Part shown: positions 2,766 through 62,615 of the stretch, in pieces
Position numbering within the stretch: position 1 is the first letter of the stretch
How the letters are laid out: the number at the start of each line of letters is the position of its first letter
Origin: Podarcis bocagei
Taxonomy: Eukaryota
Assembly (NCBI GenBank): GCA_964188305.1
Contig: OZ076888.1
Length of the DNA: 64,000 nucleotides
Reading direction: 5' to 3' (one strand)
Program-made: the position numbers and the translations under genes
The notes under the pieces: generated by a model
What the model was told of the DNA's origin: nothing
Seen by the model: only the letters and a program-made list of their open reading frames with translations
Database searches by the model: none

Positions 2766-30467
<27,702 letters not shown>

Positions 30468-30821
30468 GCCGGGGGCAAGAGCCAACTTCCTCCCGCGTTC
30501 GCCCTCAGAGCCCAACACCCGCCATAGGCGGCCCGAGCTCTCTCCGCGGAGAGCGGCGGGGGGTGGCGGCGGCGGCGGCCGCCGCGGGGAGCAATTCGAC
30601 GCCACAGTCGCCTCCGGCCGAGGCAGCCACTGAGGGGGGAGGCGGAGCAGCCGAGGTGCGCGCGCAACGATGAAGGGGGGAGGCGGGACGGGAAGCGCAT
30701 GCGCGATGTGCGCGAGAGAACTGCCGGCGCGGCGGTTAGAGCGGCGGAGTGACGTCGGGGGGGGGAGCCGCGGTTGCTCCGGCGGTTGAAGCCCCGCCCC
30801 CCAGCCCGGCTTCCTTGGGAG

Positions 30822-30952
30822 CAGCCGTTCTCAACCTGTGGGTCCCCAGATGTTGTTGGACTACAACTCCCATCATCCCTGAGCTTGCTAGCAAGGGGTG
30901 ATGGGAGTTGTAGTTGAACAACATCTGGAGACCCACAGGTTGAGAAAGGCTG
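30822..30952. mobile_element. hAT-type palindromic MITE (131 bp) in the TNKS2 promoter
   Basis: Perfect 8-bp TSD CTTGGGAG (30814-30821, 30953-30960); TIR CAGCC(G/T)TTCTCAACCTGTGGGTC; inverted ACTACAACTCCCATCA pair. Confidence 0.92.
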
Positions 30953-37337: not shown

Positions 37338-39690
37338 GAAAGATTACTGGAGGACACAGCAATCTGTTTGCAAACCCATGTGCTCCAACACGAGTAAATA
37401 CAAACTGAAATACAAATTTAAAGCTCGTTGTCAGATCCCAAAGTTCACAGGCATGTTGCCAGATCACAAATATATCTCACTGAGGACAGATTGGCTGAGC
37501 AGGTGCTAAAGAAAACACAAAACACAGCACATGCTGTTCCAGTATTTTTCATTCGTGGACTCTGGTCACATGATGACAAGGTGCTAGCCAATCGTATTCA
37601 CTTACATAAGGCTAGCCTCCAGCCTTCTGGTAGTGAAAGATTCCCCATCCACCTGCCCACACATACATACTTCCCTAACTTACTGAGATGCTCAGTCTAT
37701 TTGATGAAGTGGGAGTTGTGAGAGAACAAGCTTTCATGACAGGAAACTAGAAATGTCAAAGAAAGGAAAGAAAGAAAGATTTAGGATGCTGTAATCACAG
37801 TAGCTATTCCTCAGCTTGAGAAACCCACCCCCTTCTTGGTTCAGCCAGGTCTGGCTGATATTTAACATCCCCCCCCCCCCCCGATTTACTCAATTTGCAG
37901 TAAACTGCACCTCCTTTAATTCCCACTTATTAGAAATATATTGAGGAGAGTTCAAGTATTCAAAGAGAAAGGGGGAATTCTTAAGTTATAAAAAGGTGGT
38001 TTTTTTCTTCCTAAGGAGGGAAGAAAACCCCCAAAGGAAGATACTTAGCCATAAGACCTGTGATGTTTTCATTGCCAGATTTATAATCGGGAGAAAGGAC
38101 AAGGAAGCAGCTGAGTTTTAAAAGCCGTAATAATGTGACTTCAGCAGCCCACACATAAAATGACTAAATGTCAGTTCAGGACAAAGCTTAGACAGGCAGT
38201 TTCTCAGCAATTTAGACATCCTTTTCATGGAACACCTAGTTTCAAGGCATACAAAAGGTGAGCCTGTTCTCAACCTCATCCCTGTGATTGATTTGGCCTA
38301 CACAATGCACCATTCTAATTACTAGCAATAGCAACAATGACCTAATATAATTATGTTTAACACCTCAATAATTAGTGAGATTCTGAGGTATAGAAATAAT
38401 GAATTGGAAGTGGCAGGAGGGTGAGAATAAAGGGTGGCAGTTCAAAAGGCCTGGCAAATCAAATGCTTTGAAGTGGTTTTCAAGCTTTTTGCCTTCCAAG
38501 AACCCTTTCCCCACTGACTTGGCTGCTTTGGAATCCCTGTGCATATGCGCAGTGCCCTTGTCTCCTGAAGAGCATTCTGGGACATGTTCTAGGGTGAACT
38601 TTAAAAGTTTGCACAAGCCAGGACATGAACTTAGAATATATGCAAAACTCACCAAATGTTGCACAACTGTATGGGGGAAGATCAACAGTGCCGAACAAAT
38701 GGTCTTTCATGGAAGCCAGCTCATCTTTGCTGGTTTTCTCATTGAAGAACACCAGGGTCCTCCAGAATGTAGTTTGAAAACCATCGAGTGCTATAGAGAG
38801 AGTGAAGAGATGCCTCTGATCATGCCATCTTTTCATAGTCAAAGCTTTCTTAAACCCTTTTCAGGCATTAAACACCTGGCCGGGAGAGGGGCAGTAAGGA
38901 TGGGAACAAGACATTTCCCTCTCCATTGCTATTTCACAGCAGGGAGACTTTGTTTCTATAGAAGTTTCTGTGGGAGGAAAAATATGAATTCCTGTGACAC
39001 ATGTGTGCACGGTAAATAATAAAAGAATCAGCTGAGTGCTTTGATTCAAAACGTGGGGCTGAATTCTCTCTCCAGCAGGGGAGAGCCACACACTCAAGCA
39101 GTACAGTGAAGCATTGGCATGTAGGCTGTTAAACCTTTTGCATATTCCATTTAGTCCACTTGCAAAGCGCTCCCCTCTTTCTACCCCACTTGCACTGGAC
39201 AGACCACTTACTTTTAAGTGAGCTTAAAATGTGTTACTTACCAAATGTTCCAAATGTTAGATTCATGCATTTACCCAAGCAGCAGAAAGGAGAACACAGG
39301 CAGAATACTCTTGTGTAGAAAACACAGAGAAATAGCTTCAAACACATGCTCTAAGCTTGGAGCAAAGCTTAGACACATCTTCCTTGGTTAGTTACATGGC
39401 GAGAAGGGAGACAGGAGGAATAAGAAAATTTCACTTCCTCCCTCATCAGAGAAGAGACGGCATGGCCTACCTGAGTCCAGGAACACAGTTCTATGATCTT
39501 AATCCCTTCATGCACTCACTAATGTTCATGCATAGTTATGTTTGGGTGCAATTTCCTGTGGCCCCTTGCATAATTAGGGTTCTGTAATGTACAAGAAGAC
39601 TCCAGGAATACAAAAAAGCTACCCCTTGCAGACTCCACACAGCTGAGCTAGTGTTTAAGAGGGCTTTAAACTGCTTTTCAACGTCTATAC

Positions 39691-39817
39691 CAGACATAGG
39701 CAAACTTGGCTATTTGGGACTACAATTCCCATCATCCCTGACCACTGGTCCTGTTAGCTAGGGATCATGGGAGTTGTAGTCCCAAAACATCTGGAGGGCC
39801 GAGTTTGCCTATGCCTG
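39691..39817. mobile_element. hAT palindromic MITE (127 bp) with ACTACAA(T/C)TCCCA motifs
   Basis: TSD GTCTATAC/ATCTATAC; TIR CAG(A/G)CATAGGCAAACT; internal design as in 30822-30952. Confidence 0.85.
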
Positions 39818-45099: not shown

Positions 45100-45312
45100 T
45101 AATTTTAATTTTATGAATTTAAATTCTTCTCCAAGGAGCTCAAAGTGGTGTACATGATTCTCTCTCTCTCCTCATTTAATCACAACGACCCTGTGAGGTA
45201 AGTTTAGACTGAGAGGCTAAACTCAAGGTTACCCCATGAGCTTCATGGCCAAATGGGGATTCAAACCTTGGCCTCCCAGGTGCTACTCCGGCAATTTAAC
45301 TACTACACCACA
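45100..45312 (-). mobile_element. tRNA-derived SINE
   Basis: Reverse complement TGTGGTGTAGTAGTTAAA...GGTTTGAATCCCC (A/B-box-like head); body similar to 58440-58580. Confidence 0.7.
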
Positions 45313-45317
45313 CAGGA

Positions 45318-51577: not shown

Positions 51578-53194
51578 AAAGAAAAGATGGCGGAGGCACT
51601 TTTTCCAGTCTGAGGGCCACGTGGCCCATTGGGCAACCTGCTAAGAGCCACATGCCCGTGGTGGGTGGAGCCAGAGGTGAAAGTGGGTGGAGCAACCAAT
51701 GTTACCTTTGTGCCCTAGCCTTGTCTCTATACACACATACTCCTCCTCTCTGTTCTCCATCCAGGTGAGCAAGAGGTATTATCAGAGTTCAAGAACACAC
51801 TCCAGCCCAGCAAAAAATCTTGGGCTGTGAAGCAGGGCAAGTGAGATGCGTATAACCTTGGGAATGTTCTGAGGATCACTTAAGCCTGGAGGGGCCATAT
51901 TTGGTATGGACCCTAAGGTTCCCCACCTTGTCGTAAAGTCATCGCCTGTACTGTATGAAATTCATGTCCCGAAAGAGAAATGCACACCTGTGGGGCTGTC
52001 AAGCAGTCACTCCAGAAAGTCTCCAGAGAGGAGCATAGCTGTTGCGGCATCCCTTCTGGCACAATACCATGGCCTGTTGCACAACTGCCTGCCCTGCAGT
52101 TCACAAGAGTGCAGGTGTCTGCCAGGAACTGGAAGTTAACAACCCCACAGAGGAACAGTTAGGACCACCCCCGTCACTACTAGGCATGAGAGGGAGCTTG
52201 TGGTCTGCCTGAAACAGGGCATGGGATGGATCCTGTACCATCTCACAGCCTGTAGAGAGGAAGGAGCATTGAGCTATAGCCAGCAGCTGGGGCACATAGT
52301 GCCTGAATCTGGATGCCCAACAGGTGAGGGCATGACAGAGAGAAGAGGGAGAAATGTAGGATACAACTTTTGCTGTGTTTTGTCCATTCTGGTGGCATAT
52401 CTGGTGTGTTCCCCCAGTGTCTCTTTTGTCTGGCATGTCCCAGGTTCGTTGGCATACCAGAGCTTTTACCAAATCCTAAAGTTCTTCTGCCAATGGAACT
52501 CAAATATCAGATTGTGTCCTATGCCACCTAAAGAACCATGAAAGCCCAATTCACTTACAAGCTTGGCCACAGGTTATACAGAATGAAGCTCCTTTTATTT
52601 TCCTTGTACAGCAAACTCCTCTCGCAAGAAATGAATAAATAAACAAACTATTAGGCATCCGTTAGCTGACATGAACATACAAACATTTTAATCCTTTAAA
52701 AAAGGAAAGAAAGAACGAAATAGTTTAAAAGAAAAAGGAGTTGGTAAAAAGTTACGTGGGTCGATGACAGAACGGGGCTGGGATTACAAGTCTGTAAGAT
52801 GATTCTTTGTGGAGTTTCAACAACGACATTTTGTCTTTGTCCAGAAAAAAAAACCTCAAAGCTAATGTGGCTTTATGCCACAGGGTATATTTTGCAACTC
52901 TGTGTGCTTCATGCCAGGAGTGACTCTAGACTGGAAACCGCATGGCAGTCTCCAAGAATGAAGCTCTTTTTTGCAGGTAACTTTTAAAAATATTTAACAT
53001 ATAAACAATGAAATTCAGAAACATGCAGGGAACAACTCGCTTGCCCTGCATGCACAGCCCTGGTGTGCACAGGCTCTCAAAAAAGGCGACTTCCCTCGTT
53101 CCTCAGCTTATGCCTGAAGGCACAGAGAGGAAGGCCTGGGTGGAAATGCAGGATATGGGTGCAAGACTATCATCCCCACTAATATACCTTATGC

Positions 53195-53674
53195 CAGTGT
53201 TTCCCAAACGTTTTTGGGCAACGGCACACCTGCTTACCGGAAAAAAATCTCGCGGCACACCACCATTAAAGCCCCGCCCCCGTGACGTCAGCGCGCAGCG
53301 TCACGCCGGGAGGGACGCACAAAAATGAAAGTTTTTTCCCTCCCCCTTGCCGGGGTGGGAGGAGGCAGCAGAGCGAGGGCAGCTGAGGCGGCGGCGGCTG
53401 CGATAGCGGGCGGAGGAGGAGCCGTCGCCGGGAGTTGCTGCTGCTGCTGTTGCTGCTGCTGCCCGGACATGCCGGCCTCCTCCTCCTCCGCTGTCTCTCG
53501 CGCGCCTCCCTTTTGCGCGCGCTGCCCCGCCGCTCGGCACGACCACCGCGGAGCCGCCCCGGCTCGACGCGGATCCTCGCCGCCGCCGCCTCTCGCCCGC
53601 CTCCCTCCCACGGCACACCAGCCGGTGTCTCACGGCACAGTAGTGTGCCGCGGAACACCGGTTGGGAAACACTG
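53195..53674. mobile_element. Non-autonomous hAT element carrying a captured gene 5' fragment (RANBP9-like)
   Basis: Perfect 8-bp TSD CCTTATGC; TIR CAGTGTTTCCCAA; GGCACAC subterminal repeats; GC-rich interior ~53338-53605 encodes MSGQ9LPATAPPPPAIAAAAASAALALLPPP on the minus strand. Confidence 0.9.
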
Positions 53675-53892
53675 CCTTATGCTGCCTGTGTGCGGGCAGT
53701 GGGAGAGGGAAAAGTGGACCCTTAGGTAGATCTTCCACATGCGGGCATGACAACTGCATCATCGCGAAAGGACTGTGTGCCCATTGTATTCATGATGCAC
53801 AACAAAAATGATCACAAAATGCAGAATACAGTAAGCCTGCAACTTATGCACATTTAGCTTGTGCACATTCAGCTTTACATGCTTGGCAATTA

Positions 53893-53947
53893 AAATGAAA
53901 TGAAATGAAATGAAATGATTAGAATAGAATAGAATAGAATAGAATAG
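53893..53947. repeat. (AAATG)n/(AATAG)n pentanucleotide microsatellite
   Basis: Direct inspection. Confidence 0.9.
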
Positions 53948-56900
53948 TGGAAATGGGGGGGATCCAGGGGGGAGGGGAAAGCTTTGGCAATCCCACCCTA
54001 ATGTGCTTTGACTATACATGATTTTGGCTTTAAGCTTGATCCCCATGCAAATTGCAGGCTTAATGTATTTTCTTATAATACTAAGCACTTTCTTATACTA
54101 CAGGGCCATGGGTTGCTGCAGCAGGAAAGCTGGAACACCAGGGCCCATTGAGATCCACAGCCATTGGGCCCCTCCCTCCCTTTCAAGGTGGTCATTCTAA
54201 GAACAATTTTGACTGTGTACACATTACTCAGTGAGGCCACTCCCCCCCAATGTATTTGCACATCATTGTACGCATCAGCACAGTTGGATGTGCTTTTGAA
54301 AAAAATCGCCGTCTGTTCACACCCGCTGGTGGACTGGGAGTGTGGATGTCTTCAGGCGGCTTACATTTTCAAATCGTTTCAAAGGTGTTTGAGGGAAAAC
54401 ACAATATTTCTCAAGAAACTCCAGGACAGATGTGAATTGTGGCTAGCGTGTTTATACGACTTCCCAAACCAGTCGTGAGAAGACACTGAACTGGAGGCAG
54501 AACAAATGGGAGTGTGTCCACAGCCTCTATAACTTGAGGAACTGGTACTTGAGTTTGTTTGTTTTCCTTCTCTATCCATTTTGCCTTTTGTGCTCTGCCT
54601 TTCAGATTTTAAGCCTGTGAGCAGGAAGTTTTTAATCTATGTATGGCATTTAGAATATGTTAGATGCTTCATAAATTATACTACTACTACTACTACTAAT
54701 AATAATAAATGGGTGGGGAGGCAATTCAAATGGATTTCCTCCATTTCATAGCTTCTGGGATTATCCTGATGGATCCCTGCCTGTGCAAATGATGTTGCAC
54801 GTTTCCAGGAAATGAAACTATGTAAGCTGGATCCCTTCAGTTGCCTTTGTGTGTCAGCAGACTCCAGAGGAATCCATCCAAAAACAACCTGATGTAAGAA
54901 AATATTACACTGGAAAGAGTCCAGTCTAAAAACAATGCTCATCTGTGTTGTACTATTAGGACAGCATTATACCCTGTGATTTTTTTAAAGTTGACATTCA
55001 GATTCTGAGGCTGAAATTCGAGGTCAACGTCAAGAGGTTAATGTTTTGTGAATAATGTCATTTTTGCTAAAAATGTATCGTGAGAGCTGATCAGAGACAA
55101 GAAGTAATGCAGAGTTGGAAAGGGGCTAATTTGTGTATCATCTATATTGGTCTTCCCAAGTGCTATCAAAGAAATAATTTTATTCCTAAATGGAATTTAC
55201 TAATTTTTTAACTTAGCTTAAAAGAAAAGAAGGGTGCTTCTTAAATTTGCAGTTGTCACTTCCCCTTTAAAGGAAAAGGTGCCAACATCAAAGCAATGGA
55301 ACAGAGTCCTCTATTTATAAACAGAACAAGTACATTGCTGGCAGCAGCATCCTTGGCAGGCTAATGACCTTGTATCAAATCCTTATTTTGCCTTAAGTGG
55401 ACTTTGGCAGGGTAGCTTTCCTTATGCTGGGAATCTGCCAACAAGGATGTGATTGACACCTGTCAACAAGGTAGCAGAAAGAGATCATGTGCCTGAGTCA
55501 TAAATTCCAGACAGATGTCAAGCTATAAAGGTTCCCATCATGGACTTGGTTTTGATGGCTGGTCCAACATTTTTGGATTACCATCCAGTCCCTCTGTGAA
55601 TCACTTTGAAAGGTTCTTTATATGTTACTAAAAATAGGATTCATTATTTCATATACTCACACTCAAGGCTGCTACCTTTGGAACACTGAACTTTCCACAA
55701 TGTTGGTCCCGCTTATGATTTTAATATTAGATTTATGCAAAGATTTAGTCTTTGCATGAGATTTTACTTAGCAATTGGAAATGTGCAGTTTTGCCCATTT
55801 CTCCATTGGCTGTTCTCTGATCATGTACAGCAGCGATCGAACTGGAGCCACATTTGAAGGGCTACTTCAAATGCAAAGAAAATACGTAAGGAGGAAGAGA
55901 AAATGCATTTCATAAATCATGTGAACGAAAAAAAGGGGGCTTTATTCTAGCATTTTAAAATTGTATCAGTGGAGGGGCAATGCCTGTCAGCCTCGCTTTT
56001 CCCACCTCCTAGCCTTCTGGCATTGAGTGGGAAGGTCAGAAGCAAGGATAAACTGAAGCCACTTCTAGTCTTCAAGGATCAACATAGCCAGGACTTGTGC
56101 AAGATCAGGGTCTCTGATTGTAGAGAGGGTTGTAAGTTACTGGGTACAGTTTCAGAATGTCCAAATAGGGCTACAGTCCGATCTGTTTGATCCACCAAAT
56201 ACACTTCTATGATACAAATTTTCCGCTTTGAAATATCCCTCAGCAAATCTGCAGGGTATTGGTCACAATATACATTATGAAACTTGGAGAATATGCAGAA
56301 TATGCATCATGAAAGTTGGCGGCCTTGTGAGCAGGGAGGTGCGTGTGTGTTGCCTTTTTTTGCCCTTCTTTGCCTCAATGGGATACTTGGAAATTCAACT
56401 GGATCTTTAACCCATAGAAGTGAACTGAAAGGACTCCCTCCATCTCTCAAACACAGGAGACTGGTTCTGCAGTTTGGAGAAAAAAATTATATCTCTTAAA
56501 ACAACTAAAAGAAAAGAAAAGGAAGAAGGAAATCCATGAAACTGTGGTATATCTGTGAGGAGAGCGGGTACACAACATGGCACAGAGATATGTGTTGCAT
56601 TGTTTATCATTAGTGTATCATTCATGTTGTCCTGGGCACTAGCCAATATGTGAAGATGTCACGTAGCACTCGTAACTACAATAGGTACATTTAGCTTGGG
56701 AGCGGAAAAATCATTTTTGTAATAAGACACTATTATACTTTTAATGCTAGGCAAATGTACTGGCGACAGAAGTGCTACGTTGGAGTAAAACACCTGGCTG
56801 CTCTGAAAGAGCTGAAGGACAGCTGTTACAATCGTGACATTAAAAATACATTGCCCAGACTACAAAGAGTTCTTGCGGTAATCTCACCTCAAACACTTGA

Positions 56901-57625
56901 GACAAAATGCCATTGTCAGCTTTGAGCATAAAATGCAGCAATGTTTAATCAGGGATTATTTATGCCAGAGAAACAAAAACCCAAAGTTAAAAACTTTGGA
57001 ACTGAAAAACTTTGAAATGGAACAGGTAAGAAACAGACTAGGGAAAGGTGTCCTTGAAGAGCTCTGGTGGAAACAGAGTCACCATTCAGAGAAATCTCAT
57101 TTCTGTAATGGGAGTACTGGTTTACAAGATACAGTATCAGCCTTCATAGGGCAGCTATCTTCAATCACCAAATACCAGCTGTTGATGTTTTTTTTTTAAA
57201 AAGATACCCACACAAGTTAGGCTGCTACCTGAATGTACCAATTATTTGTTTAAGGAAAAAGTGCTGACATTTGCATACTTTTCTGTAAAAAAAAGGGGGG
57301 GGCAAATGGTTCCAGATCGACTGAGAGGAGAGGATGCTGTTTCCTCTCCTACCTTTGTAGGGCTTGAGGACCAATTTTTGCAGTCCTACTGTCTGATTTT
57401 GAAGAGAGTCCAGGTTTCACTTAACACATTGGCATGAGTCGAAAATGAAGAAGGGGGAGATTGTTGCTCTTGCAATGTCCTTTGCCTCTGACATTTCTGC
57501 CTTGTACTTTTTATGAGCTTTCCTTGTGCAGCGTGAACGGTGGCACCTCTAGCTTTCAGAGGCCACTTGTGATGTCTGCCCAGTGTCAAGCTACCCTCCA
57601 GATAACCAAGCATGTTCCTTCCATG

Positions 57626-57776
57626 CTTCTCAGTCCTAATAAAATATGTGTAATGTCATCCTGCATAACTCATCTGGTACTCAGAGTACTCAAGCTGAAC
57701 AACTTCTTCTTAGTCCTAATAAAATATGTGTAATGTCATCCTGCATAACTCATCTGGTATGCAGAGTACTGAAGTT
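57626..57776. repeat. 80-bp tandem duplication
   Basis: CTTCT(C/T)AGTCCTAATAAAATATGTGTAATGTCATCCTGCATAACTCATCTGGTA at 57626 and 57706. Confidence 0.9.
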
Positions 57777-58439
57777 GGGGCATGTCTGCCCCATAAAGAA
57801 AATGATAATCAAATTCTGCACTGAATTCTGCGCTGAAATAAACTTTAGATATATATATTTTTTGCAAGTGGAATAAATGGTCCCAATGACATCCTTAAAA
57901 GACAATTCTATACATCTCTAGTCAGACGTAAGTCCCAAGGAGTTCAGCTGGGCTTAAGTCCAGATAAGTGGTTATTATGGGACTGCAGCCTTATTCACTG
58001 GTTTGAGTTTAATTTATATAAGGAGGGACAGAAATGGAGATTGTAAGCAGGGATATGGCATTCCCCTCGGCCCGTGGGAATTTTCTTCCTAAAGTAACAC
58101 TTCATGCAAGGACAGCCGTTTGCCAAGAAAAGTCAGAGAGGGATTGTGGAGCATAATGCAATACCTGTTTGCACGTAGGTTATTTTTGCTTTGCTAACCA
58201 GGAGCAAGGTGCTGTGCAGAACACAGAAGCGACACACACAAGCACCTTAGCCCCAGAAGGTGTGCTTCATCCCCATCCCCATTTCATTTTGATACTTGGC
58301 ACATGGGGGGGGCATCATTTAGGCTGTATACACACAGCATTTGAAATAAACAGAGGCCAATTATTTTTATTTTTTACAGTGGGCTTTTGTACACTGCGGT
58401 TTGCAACTATACACACCCTCATGTGATAACATCATCTCA

Positions 58440-58580
58440 AGTGTGGCATAGTGGTTAGAGTGCTGGACTGGGACTGGGGAAAGGAAGGTGGAAATCCTCA
58501 CCCAGCAATGAACTTCGCTGGGCTCAATCACTATCTCTCAGCTTAATTTACCTCGCAGGCTTTTTGTGAGGATCAAAACA
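58440..58580 (+). mobile_element. tRNA-derived SINE
   Basis: GTGTGGCATAGTGGTTAGAGTGCTGGACT head; CTCTCAGCTTAATTTACCTCGCAGG body. Confidence 0.75.
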
Positions 58581-58907
58581 GAGGGGCAAAGTTATATATT
58601 GTTACAGATCTAGGGTAACAGAGGTTGGGGGTGTAAGGTCACCTGTAACTGCTAGAGTTAGGGAATGCTAGAAATTAATAAACAGTATAATTGAGATAAT
58701 ATTGAAGGGAAGGTGCCAGATGTTAGATCTAAAATACAGGCTAAACCAGGAAATCTCCTTGTGGGAAGGACCATCAAGGTATGGCCAGTCATTGACCTTC
58801 TGCCTGACTCTGGGTAAATAGCAGAGTTGGGAGGGGGAGTTTACAGGAGGCATGATGTCACATAGGAAAAAGGTGTCCTTTTGAAACTGAGAGGCTGAGG
58901 AAGAAGG

Positions 58908-59157
58908 CAGGGTCAGCAAACCTTTTCAGCAGGGGGCCGGTCCACTGTCCCTCAGACCTTGTGGGGGCTGGACTATTTTTTGGGGGGGTAAGGGGGGAAT
59001 GAATGAATTCCTATGCCCCACAAATAACCTAGAGATGCATTTTAAATAAAAGGATACATTCTACTCATGTAAAAACACGCTGATTCCTGGACCATCCATG
59101 GGCTGGATTTAGAAGGCGCTTGGGCCGGATCCGGGCCCCTTAGTTTGCCTACCCATG
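58908..59157. mobile_element. hAT MITE (~250 bp), inverted copy of the 45318-45561 family
   Basis: Reverse-complement similarity along its length; AAGAAGG direct repeat at both flanks. Confidence 0.85.
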
Positions 59158-59918
59158 AAGAAGGGGGAGAACTGGATGTGCTGCTGTGAAGGCCAGAACC
59201 ATCTTGGTGAATTGGCTGAAGAAAGGCTGGGAAAGAGCACAGAGATGTCTGGGAATCCAGTGCTGGGCTGCTGTGAAGGATAGGCTGCTCCTGAGATGCG
59301 AATGCTGTGAACTCTCTTCAGAGTAGATCCAGGTGTAAATATGTGTACAAGAAACCATATTTATTGAACACACTAGTTTCCACCGCGCCTTGATTCCCCA
59401 ATGGAAACAGCAGAGATTGGGGATGGCATGCAACCTTGGAGGAGAGAAGGGGTATAAAAGTAGTAAGTAGCTAAAATGAAGCAGCAGCCTGTGATTAAAG
59501 CACTGGTGAAAAAGCTTGCCCAAATTCTGAAGCCGCCTTTCCCCCAAAAGTCATTTGCAATCCTGTTTCCCTGGAGCAGAGAGACAGCGGGTGTTTCCCT
59601 GGATTAATGATGTGGGTCATTGCTCAGCTCAAAGGCTGCATTGAAGGAGATGGCTGAAAACTGCTGCAGACAGGTGGGTGACAACCACCCTTCAGAACCT
59701 TTTTATAAGTTCCCTGTCGTGGATGGCACACTGAGACTGAAATAAGAAAAGTGTGAACGAGACAAACAAACGGGATACAGTGTGGGAAGATTATTTCTGG
59801 TCTGCAGGAGGCTCGAAAAGGTGGCTGCATGTTTGTCACAGTCAAATAATTATAGGCAAGGGTCAGGGGCCTTCCTGGAAAAGCAAAGCATGCCTCCAGG
59901 GCAGTGAAACCTTTACAC

Positions 59919-61294
59919 CAGTGTTTCCCAACCTTTTTTGGGCAAAGGCACACTTGTTTCATGAAAAAAATCTCGAGGCACACCACCATTACAGCCCCGT
60001 GACGTCAGCGCGCAGCGTCACGCCGGGAGGGACATGAATTGCTAGCAAATTACATAATCACCTCCTTAAGGGCTGGCTCATCTTCTCCGAAGGCAGAACC
60101 CCATTAATTAACAGCACAGACTCACACCATAGCCAAGACGAGGGGGGGAAACCTCAGTCATGCACAGTCATGCACATGTGGGGGCTAAATGAGGACGAAG
60201 ACTGGGCAGGGAGCAGGGTTCAAATCACCCCACCTGGCCAGGACAATCCTTGGGTGCTCCCTTGGGCCACTCGCCTGACCCACCTCGCAGGGCTGTTGTT
60301 GCGAGGATAACACAGCGGGCGATGAATGCAATGCACGAAATATATGAGAGGCGACCAGGTTTTGCAGGTGAGGGGCCCCCGCCAGCCTCCGCTTCCAACA
60401 CCCGGCGCAACGACGCCGAAGTTTCCCCCCGGGCTCGGCTCGGGGAGCAGCGCTGCTCCCCCCCGGCTCCCCTTCGCCCTCCCGGCTCTCTCTGCCGCCC
60501 ACTGGGGACCCCCCTCACCTGCCAAGTCCAGAGCGCCGGTGGAAGTTGCATGCATGCATGCAGGGCGCCGCGTTGCCATTGCGTTGCACTGCACTCCATG
60601 CAACGCCTGCACGCATGCATTGCCTTGCATGCCCGCCAAGGGGTCTCCCCGCGGTCCGATGCGTCCCCTCCGGCGCGGATGCAGCATTGCAAAAATAACC
60701 CCCCCGACGCAGCCCTACCTGGGGGGCAGCCTCCGCCGCTCCGCCTCCGCGGGGATCCCCAGGCTCCATGCTGCCGCCCGATCTCCGCGGGGGCGCAGGC
60801 AGGCTGCGCGGGGTCTGCGCGGAAGAGCCCCTGCCCGCCCGGCCGCCGCCGCCGCGCTCATTCCATGGCCGGGAGAAGAGCGCTTCAAACAAAACACCCG
60901 GCCCGCCAGGCCACGCTGGGAAACGTAGTTCACGCACCCCGCGCGGGCGCGGAGCCCAAGGGCAAGGGGACTACGGATCCCGGCAGCCCCCGCGCCGGGG
61001 ACGGAGGGGGAGAGGCCGGGTGCAGGGATGGAGGGACGGGTGGGCGAGCGAGTGAGTGAGTGGCAGCCGCCAAGCCTTGGCCGAGAGCCAGGAAGGGCCT
61101 CCCCAGAGGAGGAGGAGGGAGGCGCAGAGTGGGAGGGAGGGAGGGAACCCCAGGGGTCATCTAGTGACGGCGCCCCAATCGAAAATTTGACTTTTAAAAA
61201 AAAATCTTTCGAATTTTTTAATTTTTCCCGCGGCACACCAGGCAACATCTCGCGGCACACTAGTGTGCCACGGAACAGTGGTTGGGAAACACTG
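59919..61294. mobile_element. Non-autonomous hAT element (1376 bp) carrying a captured CpG-island promoter, first exon and intron start
   Basis: Perfect 8-bp TSD CTTTACAC (59911-59918, 61295-61302); TIR CAGTGTTTCCCAACC; left ~115 bp and right ~70 bp shared with 53195-53674; unrelated CpG-rich interior. Confidence 0.92.
60719..60769 (-). pseudogene. Captured first coding exon fragment MEPGDPRGGGAAEAAPQ (donor gene not recognised)
   Basis: agcATGg Kozak start at 60769, 17 codons, CAG|GTAGGG donor; upstream ACTACGTTTCCCA (60929-60917) and ACTACGGATCCCGGCAGCCC (60970-60989). Confidence 0.5.
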
Positions 61295-62138
61295 CTTTAC
61301 ACAATGCTCCCGCATAAGTCATTGTTCAACGACAATTATCACAAGATCTGGGAGGCCCAACAGCTTTGTAGCCATAGGGTAGAGGTGGAGGAATAGCCTC
61401 GCTGTCATTTGCCCTTTTAAACACACACACAGCTGGCTCAGGAAAGAAGTAGACAATCGGCAAACAAAACATAATAGTCAACCCATAATTAAGGCCATAA
61501 CAATATATCACAAAATGGCAAGCTATTGCTGGGTGGGTGACCATGAAAAAATATCAATGGCTTATTCTTGCAGCTTGATCCTACTGGTGAAGCTTTGTAC
61601 AGCTGCAGAAAGTGAAACAAGATCAACGGCTAGTATTTGCATATACAGCCATTATTAATGGCATATCTACAGAGGCCAGGCTAAACAACTGGCAACCCCA
61701 ATTGTGGGAAGGGAGCACTGCTGATGCTAATTGCTTTTGGCTTTTGTGGTGGCTAGTTGGGTGCTCCTCTCCTGCAGCTGTACAACAGGTAAGCTAGGCA
61801 ATATTCTTCATAGAGAGCATATTAAAGCACATGCACAGAGTAGTGGTACTTGGGGGAATTTATCATGACCTATCATCAGGGTGAACAGACGCAAAGGAGG
61901 ACAAGGGTCTTGTACTTGTGCAGAGGAAGGAATTTTAGCAGGTGCTGTTTGTCATGCAAGAAAAGGGATTTCCTTCTTTTTACACAACTCACAGGGACTT
62001 TGTTTGCCTCTGGGTGCCCTGCTGATAACCCCACAAATGATAGCCAGGTAGAATGCAAAACATACCTCCCAGCCAGCGTTGTTGTAGATACAAACACACT
62101 TTCCCACCTATAAAATTATTTGAATAGGCCTGCTTACT

Positions 62139-62399: not shown

Positions 62400-62615
62400 G
62401 GCTGTAGCATTGCTTTGATTAGGGTAGGAGCTGGACTAGGACCTGCAAGACCAGGATTCAAATCCCCATTCAGTCACACTAGGTGACCTTTGGCCAGTCA
62501 CACCGCCTCTCAGCCTAACCCATCTCACAGGGTTGCCGTGAATATCAAATGGGGAACATCACCTCAAGCTCATTGCATGAAAGGTTAATATAAATTCAAT
62601 AATAATAATAATAAA
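62400..62615 (+). mobile_element. tRNA-derived SINE with (AAT)n tail
   Basis: GGATTCAAATCCCC B-box-like motif, CTCTCAGCCTAACCCATCTCACAGGGTTG body, AAT tail. Confidence 0.7.

Follow-up and report, generated by a model that had tools for sequence, protein, structure and literature searches.

Two short elements that lie 6 kb apart in the genome of a lizard, Podarcis bocagei, carry closely similar ends around unrelated, GC-rich interiors, and raise the question of whether a single transposon family has repeatedly taken up pieces of host genes. We analysed this question in a 64,000-nucleotide stretch of contig OZ076888.1 (assembly GCA_964188305.1), hereafter the window, in which the elements E1 and E2 occupy positions 53195–53674 (480 bp) and 59919–61294 (1376 bp), respectively. 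An initial annotation of the same DNA had proposed Pack-type capture, in which a hAT transposon acquires the 5′ ends of host genes. Our preferred reading, to which we give a probability of roughly 0.65, is that E1 and E2 belong to a non-autonomous hAT family with fixed arms and a replaceable interior slot that acquires GC-rich host DNA. The Pack-type proposal stands with respect to the shared arms, the unrelated interiors, the host DNA in the interior of E2 (cargo 2) and the arm's several continuations in relatives; with respect to the donor it does not, as none was found for either cargo.

The ends of the two elements were analysed first for terminal inverted repeats (TIRs) and target-site duplications (TSDs). 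The 13-mer TIR CAGTGTTTCCCAA occurs four times in the window, each time without mismatch, and all four occurrences are the predicted ends of E1 and E2. A separate, perfect TSD (8/8) surrounds each element, CCTTATGC for E1 and CTTTACAC for E2, with a chance probability of approximately 1.5e-5 in each case, indicating that E1 and E2 are separate insertions. The left arms (122 bp in E1 and 115 bp in E2) are 87% identical, and both terminate in GGGAGGGAC; the 35-mer that closes them is identical in the two elements, with two exact occurrences in the window compared with none expected. The right arms (53606–53674 and 61226–61294; 69 bp) are 84% identical. The subterminal motif GGCACAC is present in both arms, and the four and five copies in the two elements make up 9 of the 15 copies in the window.

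Both elements exhibit the characteristics of hAT transposons, namely, an 8-bp TSD, a short TIR, a YARNG terminus (CAGTG...) and subterminal repeats. Compared with the families described in Anolis, the TIR differs by one base from that of hAT-N3_AC (CAGTGGTTCCCAACCT) and by one base from that of hAT-HT3_AC (CAGTGRTTCCCAAA), and both TSDs match the target type NYYTARRN at five of the six specified positions (PMC3014272). A Pfam scan of nine open reading frames (ORFs) detected no domain above threshold, indicating that E1 and E2 are non-autonomous, and no autonomous partner with the same TIR was found within the window. Searches for the arm and TIR patterns gave 0 matches in metagenome, viral and prokaryote-genome collections. 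These results indicate that E1 and E2 are real, independent and fairly recent insertions of non-autonomous hAT elements of one Charlie/OposCharlie-like family. The initial annotation was correct in every checkable detail of the common TIR, the arms and the separate TSDs, and its assignment to hAT with independent insertion is likewise supported.

The same ends bear on an explanation without any capture, in which the CpG islands are native to the locus and each is bracketed by two separate insertions of MITEs (miniature inverted-repeat transposable elements), or in which the arrangement is an assembly artefact. The co-occurrence of islands and arms is the only point that speaks for it, but perfect 8-bp TSDs surround each whole composite, the arms are oriented as in a single element, and independent assemblies from 12 or more read runs show the same arm–cargo junctions. 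We regard this explanation as having a negligible probability, and the bracketing of a native island by two MITEs is rejected by the TSDs.

The inner end of the left arm (53270–53316 in E1 and 59995–60033 in E2) is promoter-like, with the palindrome of a cyclic AMP response element (CRE), TGACGTCA, facing the cargo slot in both elements and a GC box in E1 only. This octamer occurs three times in the window, twice within the left arms of E1 and E2. The inner end may represent the hAT family's own promoter; both gene-like cargos are oriented against it.

The interiors of E1 and E2 (cargo 1 and cargo 2) showed zero similarity by blastn. Cargo 1 has a GC content of 0.73 and a CpG observed/expected ratio (o/e) of 0.97, and positions 60361–61160 of E2 have a GC content of 0.72 and an o/e of 0.77, compared with an o/e of 0.23 in the flanks. 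A simple scan identified five CpG-island-like segments in the window, two of which lie within E1 and E2. These values confirmed the earlier description of the interiors as unrelated and CpG-rich. The two elements cannot be aligned end to end, as copies of a homogeneous MITE can, and instead show the same termini with different interiors, as do the Pack-type TIR elements (Pack-TIRs). Nested-deletion derivatives of one master were ruled out: a deletion derivative would align fully to the longer element, while the 289-bp interior of E1 aligned nowhere in E2 by blastn. Two minor similarities concern the slot edges. A low-complexity and weak match of A/T runs (AAAAAT..GAAAG.TTTTT) between E1 53320–53337 and E2 61197–61215 (reverse complement), that is, between the inner-left edge of E1 and the inverted inner-right edge of E2, is possibly left over from an ancestral interior. 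The final 100 bp or so of cargo 2 (from approximately 61119) may be part of a longer right arm in the subfamily of E2.

Host DNA was detected in cargo 2 by means of a dispersed repeat. Three copies of a sequence resembling a short interspersed element (SINE) are present in the window at 45140–45313, 58440–58640 and 62420–62600; they are old, approximately 62–64% similar and tRNA-derived-like, and contain both a GGTTCAAATCC box and a core of ...CCTCACAGGGTTGTTGTGAGGAT.... These three copies alone (45140–45313 being reverse-complemented) were used to build an nhmmer profile, which matched E2 at 60193–60347 with E=2.2e-9, the sole significant non-training match in the window, and Rfam and tRNA scans of 52.5–62 kb detected nothing. 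The CpG-island-like core of cargo 2, 740 bp in length, adjoins this SINE-like stretch. The presence of an old dispersed host repeat within a young element indicates that cargo 2 was copied from the DNA of a SINE-bearing genome, and cargo 2 is host genomic DNA. This repeat also bears on the proposal that the cargos were gained in another host before horizontal transfer and that the donor is not in the lizard genome. Families of the hAT-HT3/OposCharlie type, with nearly the same TIR, were transferred horizontally into Anolis (PMC3014272), and the donor search found none, as such an origin predicts; but the SINE family in cargo 2 is that of the surrounding lizard DNA, which points to acquisition in a SINE-bearing genome. 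We consider a foreign origin of the cargos very improbable.

The fixed arms and replaceable slot of the preferred reading were further assessed in assemblies of relatives. A spurious 269-aa ORF across cargo 2 was used as the query, and matched only ORFs from the Logan assemblies of public read runs, in four clusters with 15 sequences and approximately 24 contigs. Twelve of these contigs (L001–L012) were read, which come from close relatives and at least 12 read runs. They show approximately 98% identity to E2 by substitutions, with the same cargo and the same junctions, and are set apart from the window by an indel of 42 bp within the SINE-like piece, at 60313. The contigs span window positions 60004–61241 only, and start exactly 30 nt before the junction between left arm and cargo. 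Logan assemblies use k=31, so 30 nt equals k−1. A unitig start at this distance indicates that the last 30-mer of the arm has more than one continuation and, hence, different interiors; the same arm leading into several interiors in relatives is what the expected signature of a de Bruijn branch represents. At the other side, the contig end at 61241 (61212 + 29) indicates that other elements share the E2 sequence from approximately 61212, which is 14 nt further inward than E1. Contig L011 crosses a right arm of variant sequence together with the TIR and enters a flank that does not resemble the window's; most of its differences from the other contigs fall in the final 130 nt. It represents either a second element elsewhere with at least the right 180 bp of E2, or a chimeric contig. 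A search for the empty site and orthology with the flanking ORF at 59627–59989 (minus strand) gave no match, and partial ORFs from the Logan contigs were absent from the protein collection. E1 did not appear in the k-mer assemblies.

The methylation history of E2 was estimated from the same contigs. Between the window copy and the consensus of the relatives, 13 of 216 CpG positions were changed, compared with 11 of 1021 other positions (5.6-fold; Fisher p=4e-5). Among the 11 CpG transitions, the decayed TpG/CpA state was in the window copy in nine cases and in the relatives' consensus in two. This faster decay of CpG indicates that the E2 copy behaves as germline-methylated DNA and not as a protected island. 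The CpG content is still high despite this decay, indicating a recent derivation of the cargo from unmethylated DNA.

According to the initial annotation, each interior looks like a gene start, and the two face the same way relative to the arms. This held only as a description, with an ATG on the minus strand of each; homologues were found for neither. On the minus strand of E1, the ATG at 53470–53468 opens a 60-codon ORF (MSGQ, poly-Q, Pro/Ala-rich) that extends into the left arm, and the CAG/CTG run of the interior reads as a CAG run after this ATG. A phmmer search of cargo 1 against PDB chains detected nothing at E≤10, and a search against 1.84 billion representatives gave only two long repetitive proteins. 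Cargo 1 may resemble the N-terminus of human RANBP9, a presumed likeness and not a result; a literature string search on RANBP9 and cargo 1 returned nothing. On the minus strand of the cargo 2 core, a 2-codon upstream ORF is followed by an ATG and 16 codons up to CAG/GT, and no homologue of this exon-like stretch was found. Taken as read from the DNA, the upstream ORF, the exon-like stretch and a pair of motifs (ACTAYRNNNCCCR; M4/ZNF143-like) are no more than suggestive of a gene start. The M4/ZNF143-like motif has ten matches in the window compared with 0.66 expected, and four of these lie within palindromic MITEs.

Several results weigh against the preferred reading or against parts of the initial annotation. 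ORFs of at least 96 aa are present in five of the six frames of E1, as GC content alone predicts, indicating that an ORF in E1 carries no evidential weight. No usable homologue of cargo 1 was found in searches of 5.8 billion proteins, 1.84 billion representatives or PDB. The M4/ZNF143-like motif is weak promoter evidence, and was downgraded as such because the palindromic MITEs of the window carry the same motif. Given the decay of its CpGs like those of methylated DNA, cargo 2 as a working dispersed promoter is disfavoured, and for E2 this weakens the earlier proposal that promoters are spread as functional units. An arm-less donor copy of cargo 2 was not present among the Logan ORFs, though 12 or more runs yielded an assembled copy of the cargo; the missing arm-less contig speaks mildly against a recent capture whose donor still exists. 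The second element indicated by L011 may be a chimeric contig. Finally, identical slot boundaries in two captures are unlike random template switching; the common boundaries may have been inherited from one cargo-bearing ancestor, with the interior replaced later.

Some of these points agree with an explanation in which E1 and E2 are ordinary heterogeneous non-autonomous hAT subfamilies, their interiors being GC-rich filler or old transposon-internal sequence, with no recurrent capture of gene 5′ ends and with gene-like features read into high GC. The donor search among Logan ORFs and proteins came back empty-handed, the frames of E1 are open irrespective of coding, and eight hAT families of Anolis share only their TIRs with any autonomous element (PMC3014272). 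The host SINE-like repeat and the 740-bp CpG island in cargo 2, in contrast, are at odds with filler, as is the finding that in relatives the arm splits precisely at the junction to enter more than one interior. The CpG o/e of 0.8–1.0 over a background of 0.23 also speaks for recent derivation from unmethylated DNA. In view of both sides, we consider filler an unlikely explanation, with perhaps a minor share of the probability.

Under the preferred reading of fixed arms with a replaceable slot, the arms would supply the cis requirements of the transposase, namely, the 13-bp TIR and the repeated GGCACAC subterminal motifs, and the interior would be the replaceable part. The slot of E2 would hold approximately 1.1 kb of host DNA, composed of a CpG island with promoter-like and first-exon-like features and the adjoining old SINE, and that of E1 would hold 289 bp of GC-rich CAG-repeat sequence resembling a 5′ untranslated region and coding start. 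For Ac/Ds, P elements and Pack elements, the accepted model is aberrant gap repair that follows excision and involves template switching. In the present family, excision would leave a double-strand gap that is repaired by synthesis from another copy of the element; the synthesis would stall at the inner arm ends, which are GC-rich and palindromic, and switch to an ectopic template, probably a GC-rich one in open chromatin; and the resulting chimera would then be mobilised in trans by the transposase of the family. The inner ends of the arms are GC-rich and partly palindromic, with GTGACG...CGTCAC followed by GGGAGGGAC on the left and CCCGCGG on the right. Stalling at these ends, together with microhomology to GC-rich open CpG-island DNA, could explain both a fixed slot and a GC bias. 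This route of capture, the origin of the cargos at gene 5′ ends and the bias are inferences. More tentatively, the family may be a currently or recently active vertebrate hAT with a fixed cargo slot that repeatedly captures DNA of unmethylated CpG islands, comprising the promoters and first exons of many genes, and amplifies some chimeras to tens or hundreds of copies, the capture site being dictated by the GC-rich palindromic arm ends. Such a family, which we put at somewhat below even odds, would represent the equivalent in animals of the Pack-MULEs, with their GC-rich and 5′ bias.

Comparison with known systems places E1 and E2 as follows. In a survey of Pack-TIRs in 100 animal genomes, hAT was the commonest carrier (208 of 370), none was found in the lizard assembly anoCar2, only four cases were multicopy, and gap filling or template switching was proposed as the origin (Tan et al. 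2021; PMC8277862). E1 and E2 resemble these elements in having a TIR transposon structure with a TSD, the Pack-TIR interior being duplicated host sequence, but differ in that one family would here carry many cargos in one slot. The Pack-MULEs of rice and maize preferentially duplicate GC-rich sequence (PMC5861414). They likewise have common termini and varied interiors of captured sequence, but are plant Mutator elements with 9–11-bp TSDs and long TIRs, whereas the present elements are hATs whose TIR is 13 bp and whose TSD is 8 bp long. Bat Helitrons (HelibatN3/NUBPL) carry a promoter, 5′ untranslated region and exon 1; gene 5′ ends are over-represented among their captures, and elements of this sort show the strongest amplification (Thomas et al. 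2014; PMC4224331). In contrast to the cut-and-paste elements analysed here, Helitrons are rolling-circle transposons without TIR or TSD, and capture by read-through. Among the non-autonomous hATs of Anolis (hAT-N3_AC, hAT-HT3N_AC and hobo-N1-15_AC), some share only their ends with other families, and the hobo-N families have taken up genomic DNA (Novick et al. 2010; PMC3014272). The likeness to E1 and E2 lies in a TIR one base apart and an 8-bp TSD of NYYTARRN type, and the difference in the CpG-island/first-exon cargo, which is not described there (PMC3014272). The two elements fit a transposon family that captures gene fragments, a kind known in principle and so far undescribed in lizards.

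Cut-and-paste transposons capture gene fragments abundantly in plants; in animals such capture is considered rare and nearly always single-copy (PMC8277862). If the preferred reading is true, a cargo-swapping, amplifying hAT family of lizards would be a tractable vertebrate system for the capture process, and would allow tests of why GC-rich 5′ ends are preferred. It would also add to the supply of promoters and first exons scattered through the genome, and give rise to spurious CpG islands by which genome annotation can be misled. The features of the two elements are listed in Table 1.

Table 1. Positions of the features of E1 and E2 in the window
Feature	Position	Strand	Remark
E1 TSD, left copy (CCTTATGC)	53187–53194	.	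Identical to 53675–53682
E1 left arm: 13-bp TIR, two GGCACAC, GC box and CRE-like palindrome TGACGTCA at 53283	53195–53316	+	
E1 interior (cargo 1), 289 bp	53317–53605	-	
E1 right arm: GGCACAC motifs and inverted TIR	53606–53674	+	
E1 TSD, right copy	53675–53682	.	
E2 TSD, left copy (CTTTACAC)	59911–59918	.	Identical to 61295–61302
E2 left arm: TIR, two GGCACAC and CRE-like palindrome at 60000	59919–60033	+	
E2 interior (cargo 2), approximately 1.18 kb of host-like genomic DNA	60034–61211	-	
Old tRNA-SINE-like dispersed repeat within cargo 2	60193–60347	+	nhmmer profile (E=2.2e-9) and alignment
CpG-island-like core of cargo 2 (GC 0.72, o/e 0.77)	60361–61100	.	
Exon-like stretch of cargo 2: ATG and 16 codons, ending in CAG/GT (GT at 60718–60717)	60719–60769	-	Read from sequence
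Two outward-facing ACTAYRNNNCCCR motifs (M4/ZNF143-like) in cargo 2	60917–60982	.	
E2 right arm; common to E1 from 61226 and to other elements in relatives from approximately 61212	61212–61294	+	
E2 TSD, right copy	61295–61302	.	Identical to 59911–59918

Elsewhere in the window, a TNKS2-like exon 1 was identified at 30180–30420 (minus strand), inside a CpG island at 30001–30900, and E1 and E2 are located 23 and 30 kb upstream of TNKS2. Palindromic MITEs with long TIRs (SPIN/hAT-N1_AC-like, ...GTTCTCAACCTGTGG...) are present at 30820–30950 and 39690–39815, each with an inverted pair of the M4/ZNF143-like motif ACTACAAYTCCCA, and one of these MITEs borders the TNKS2 CpG island. A GC-rich tandem repeat at 4651–5200, in which the ORF translations repeat a unit of approximately 20 aa three or more times, was also scored as CpG-island-like by the simple scan.

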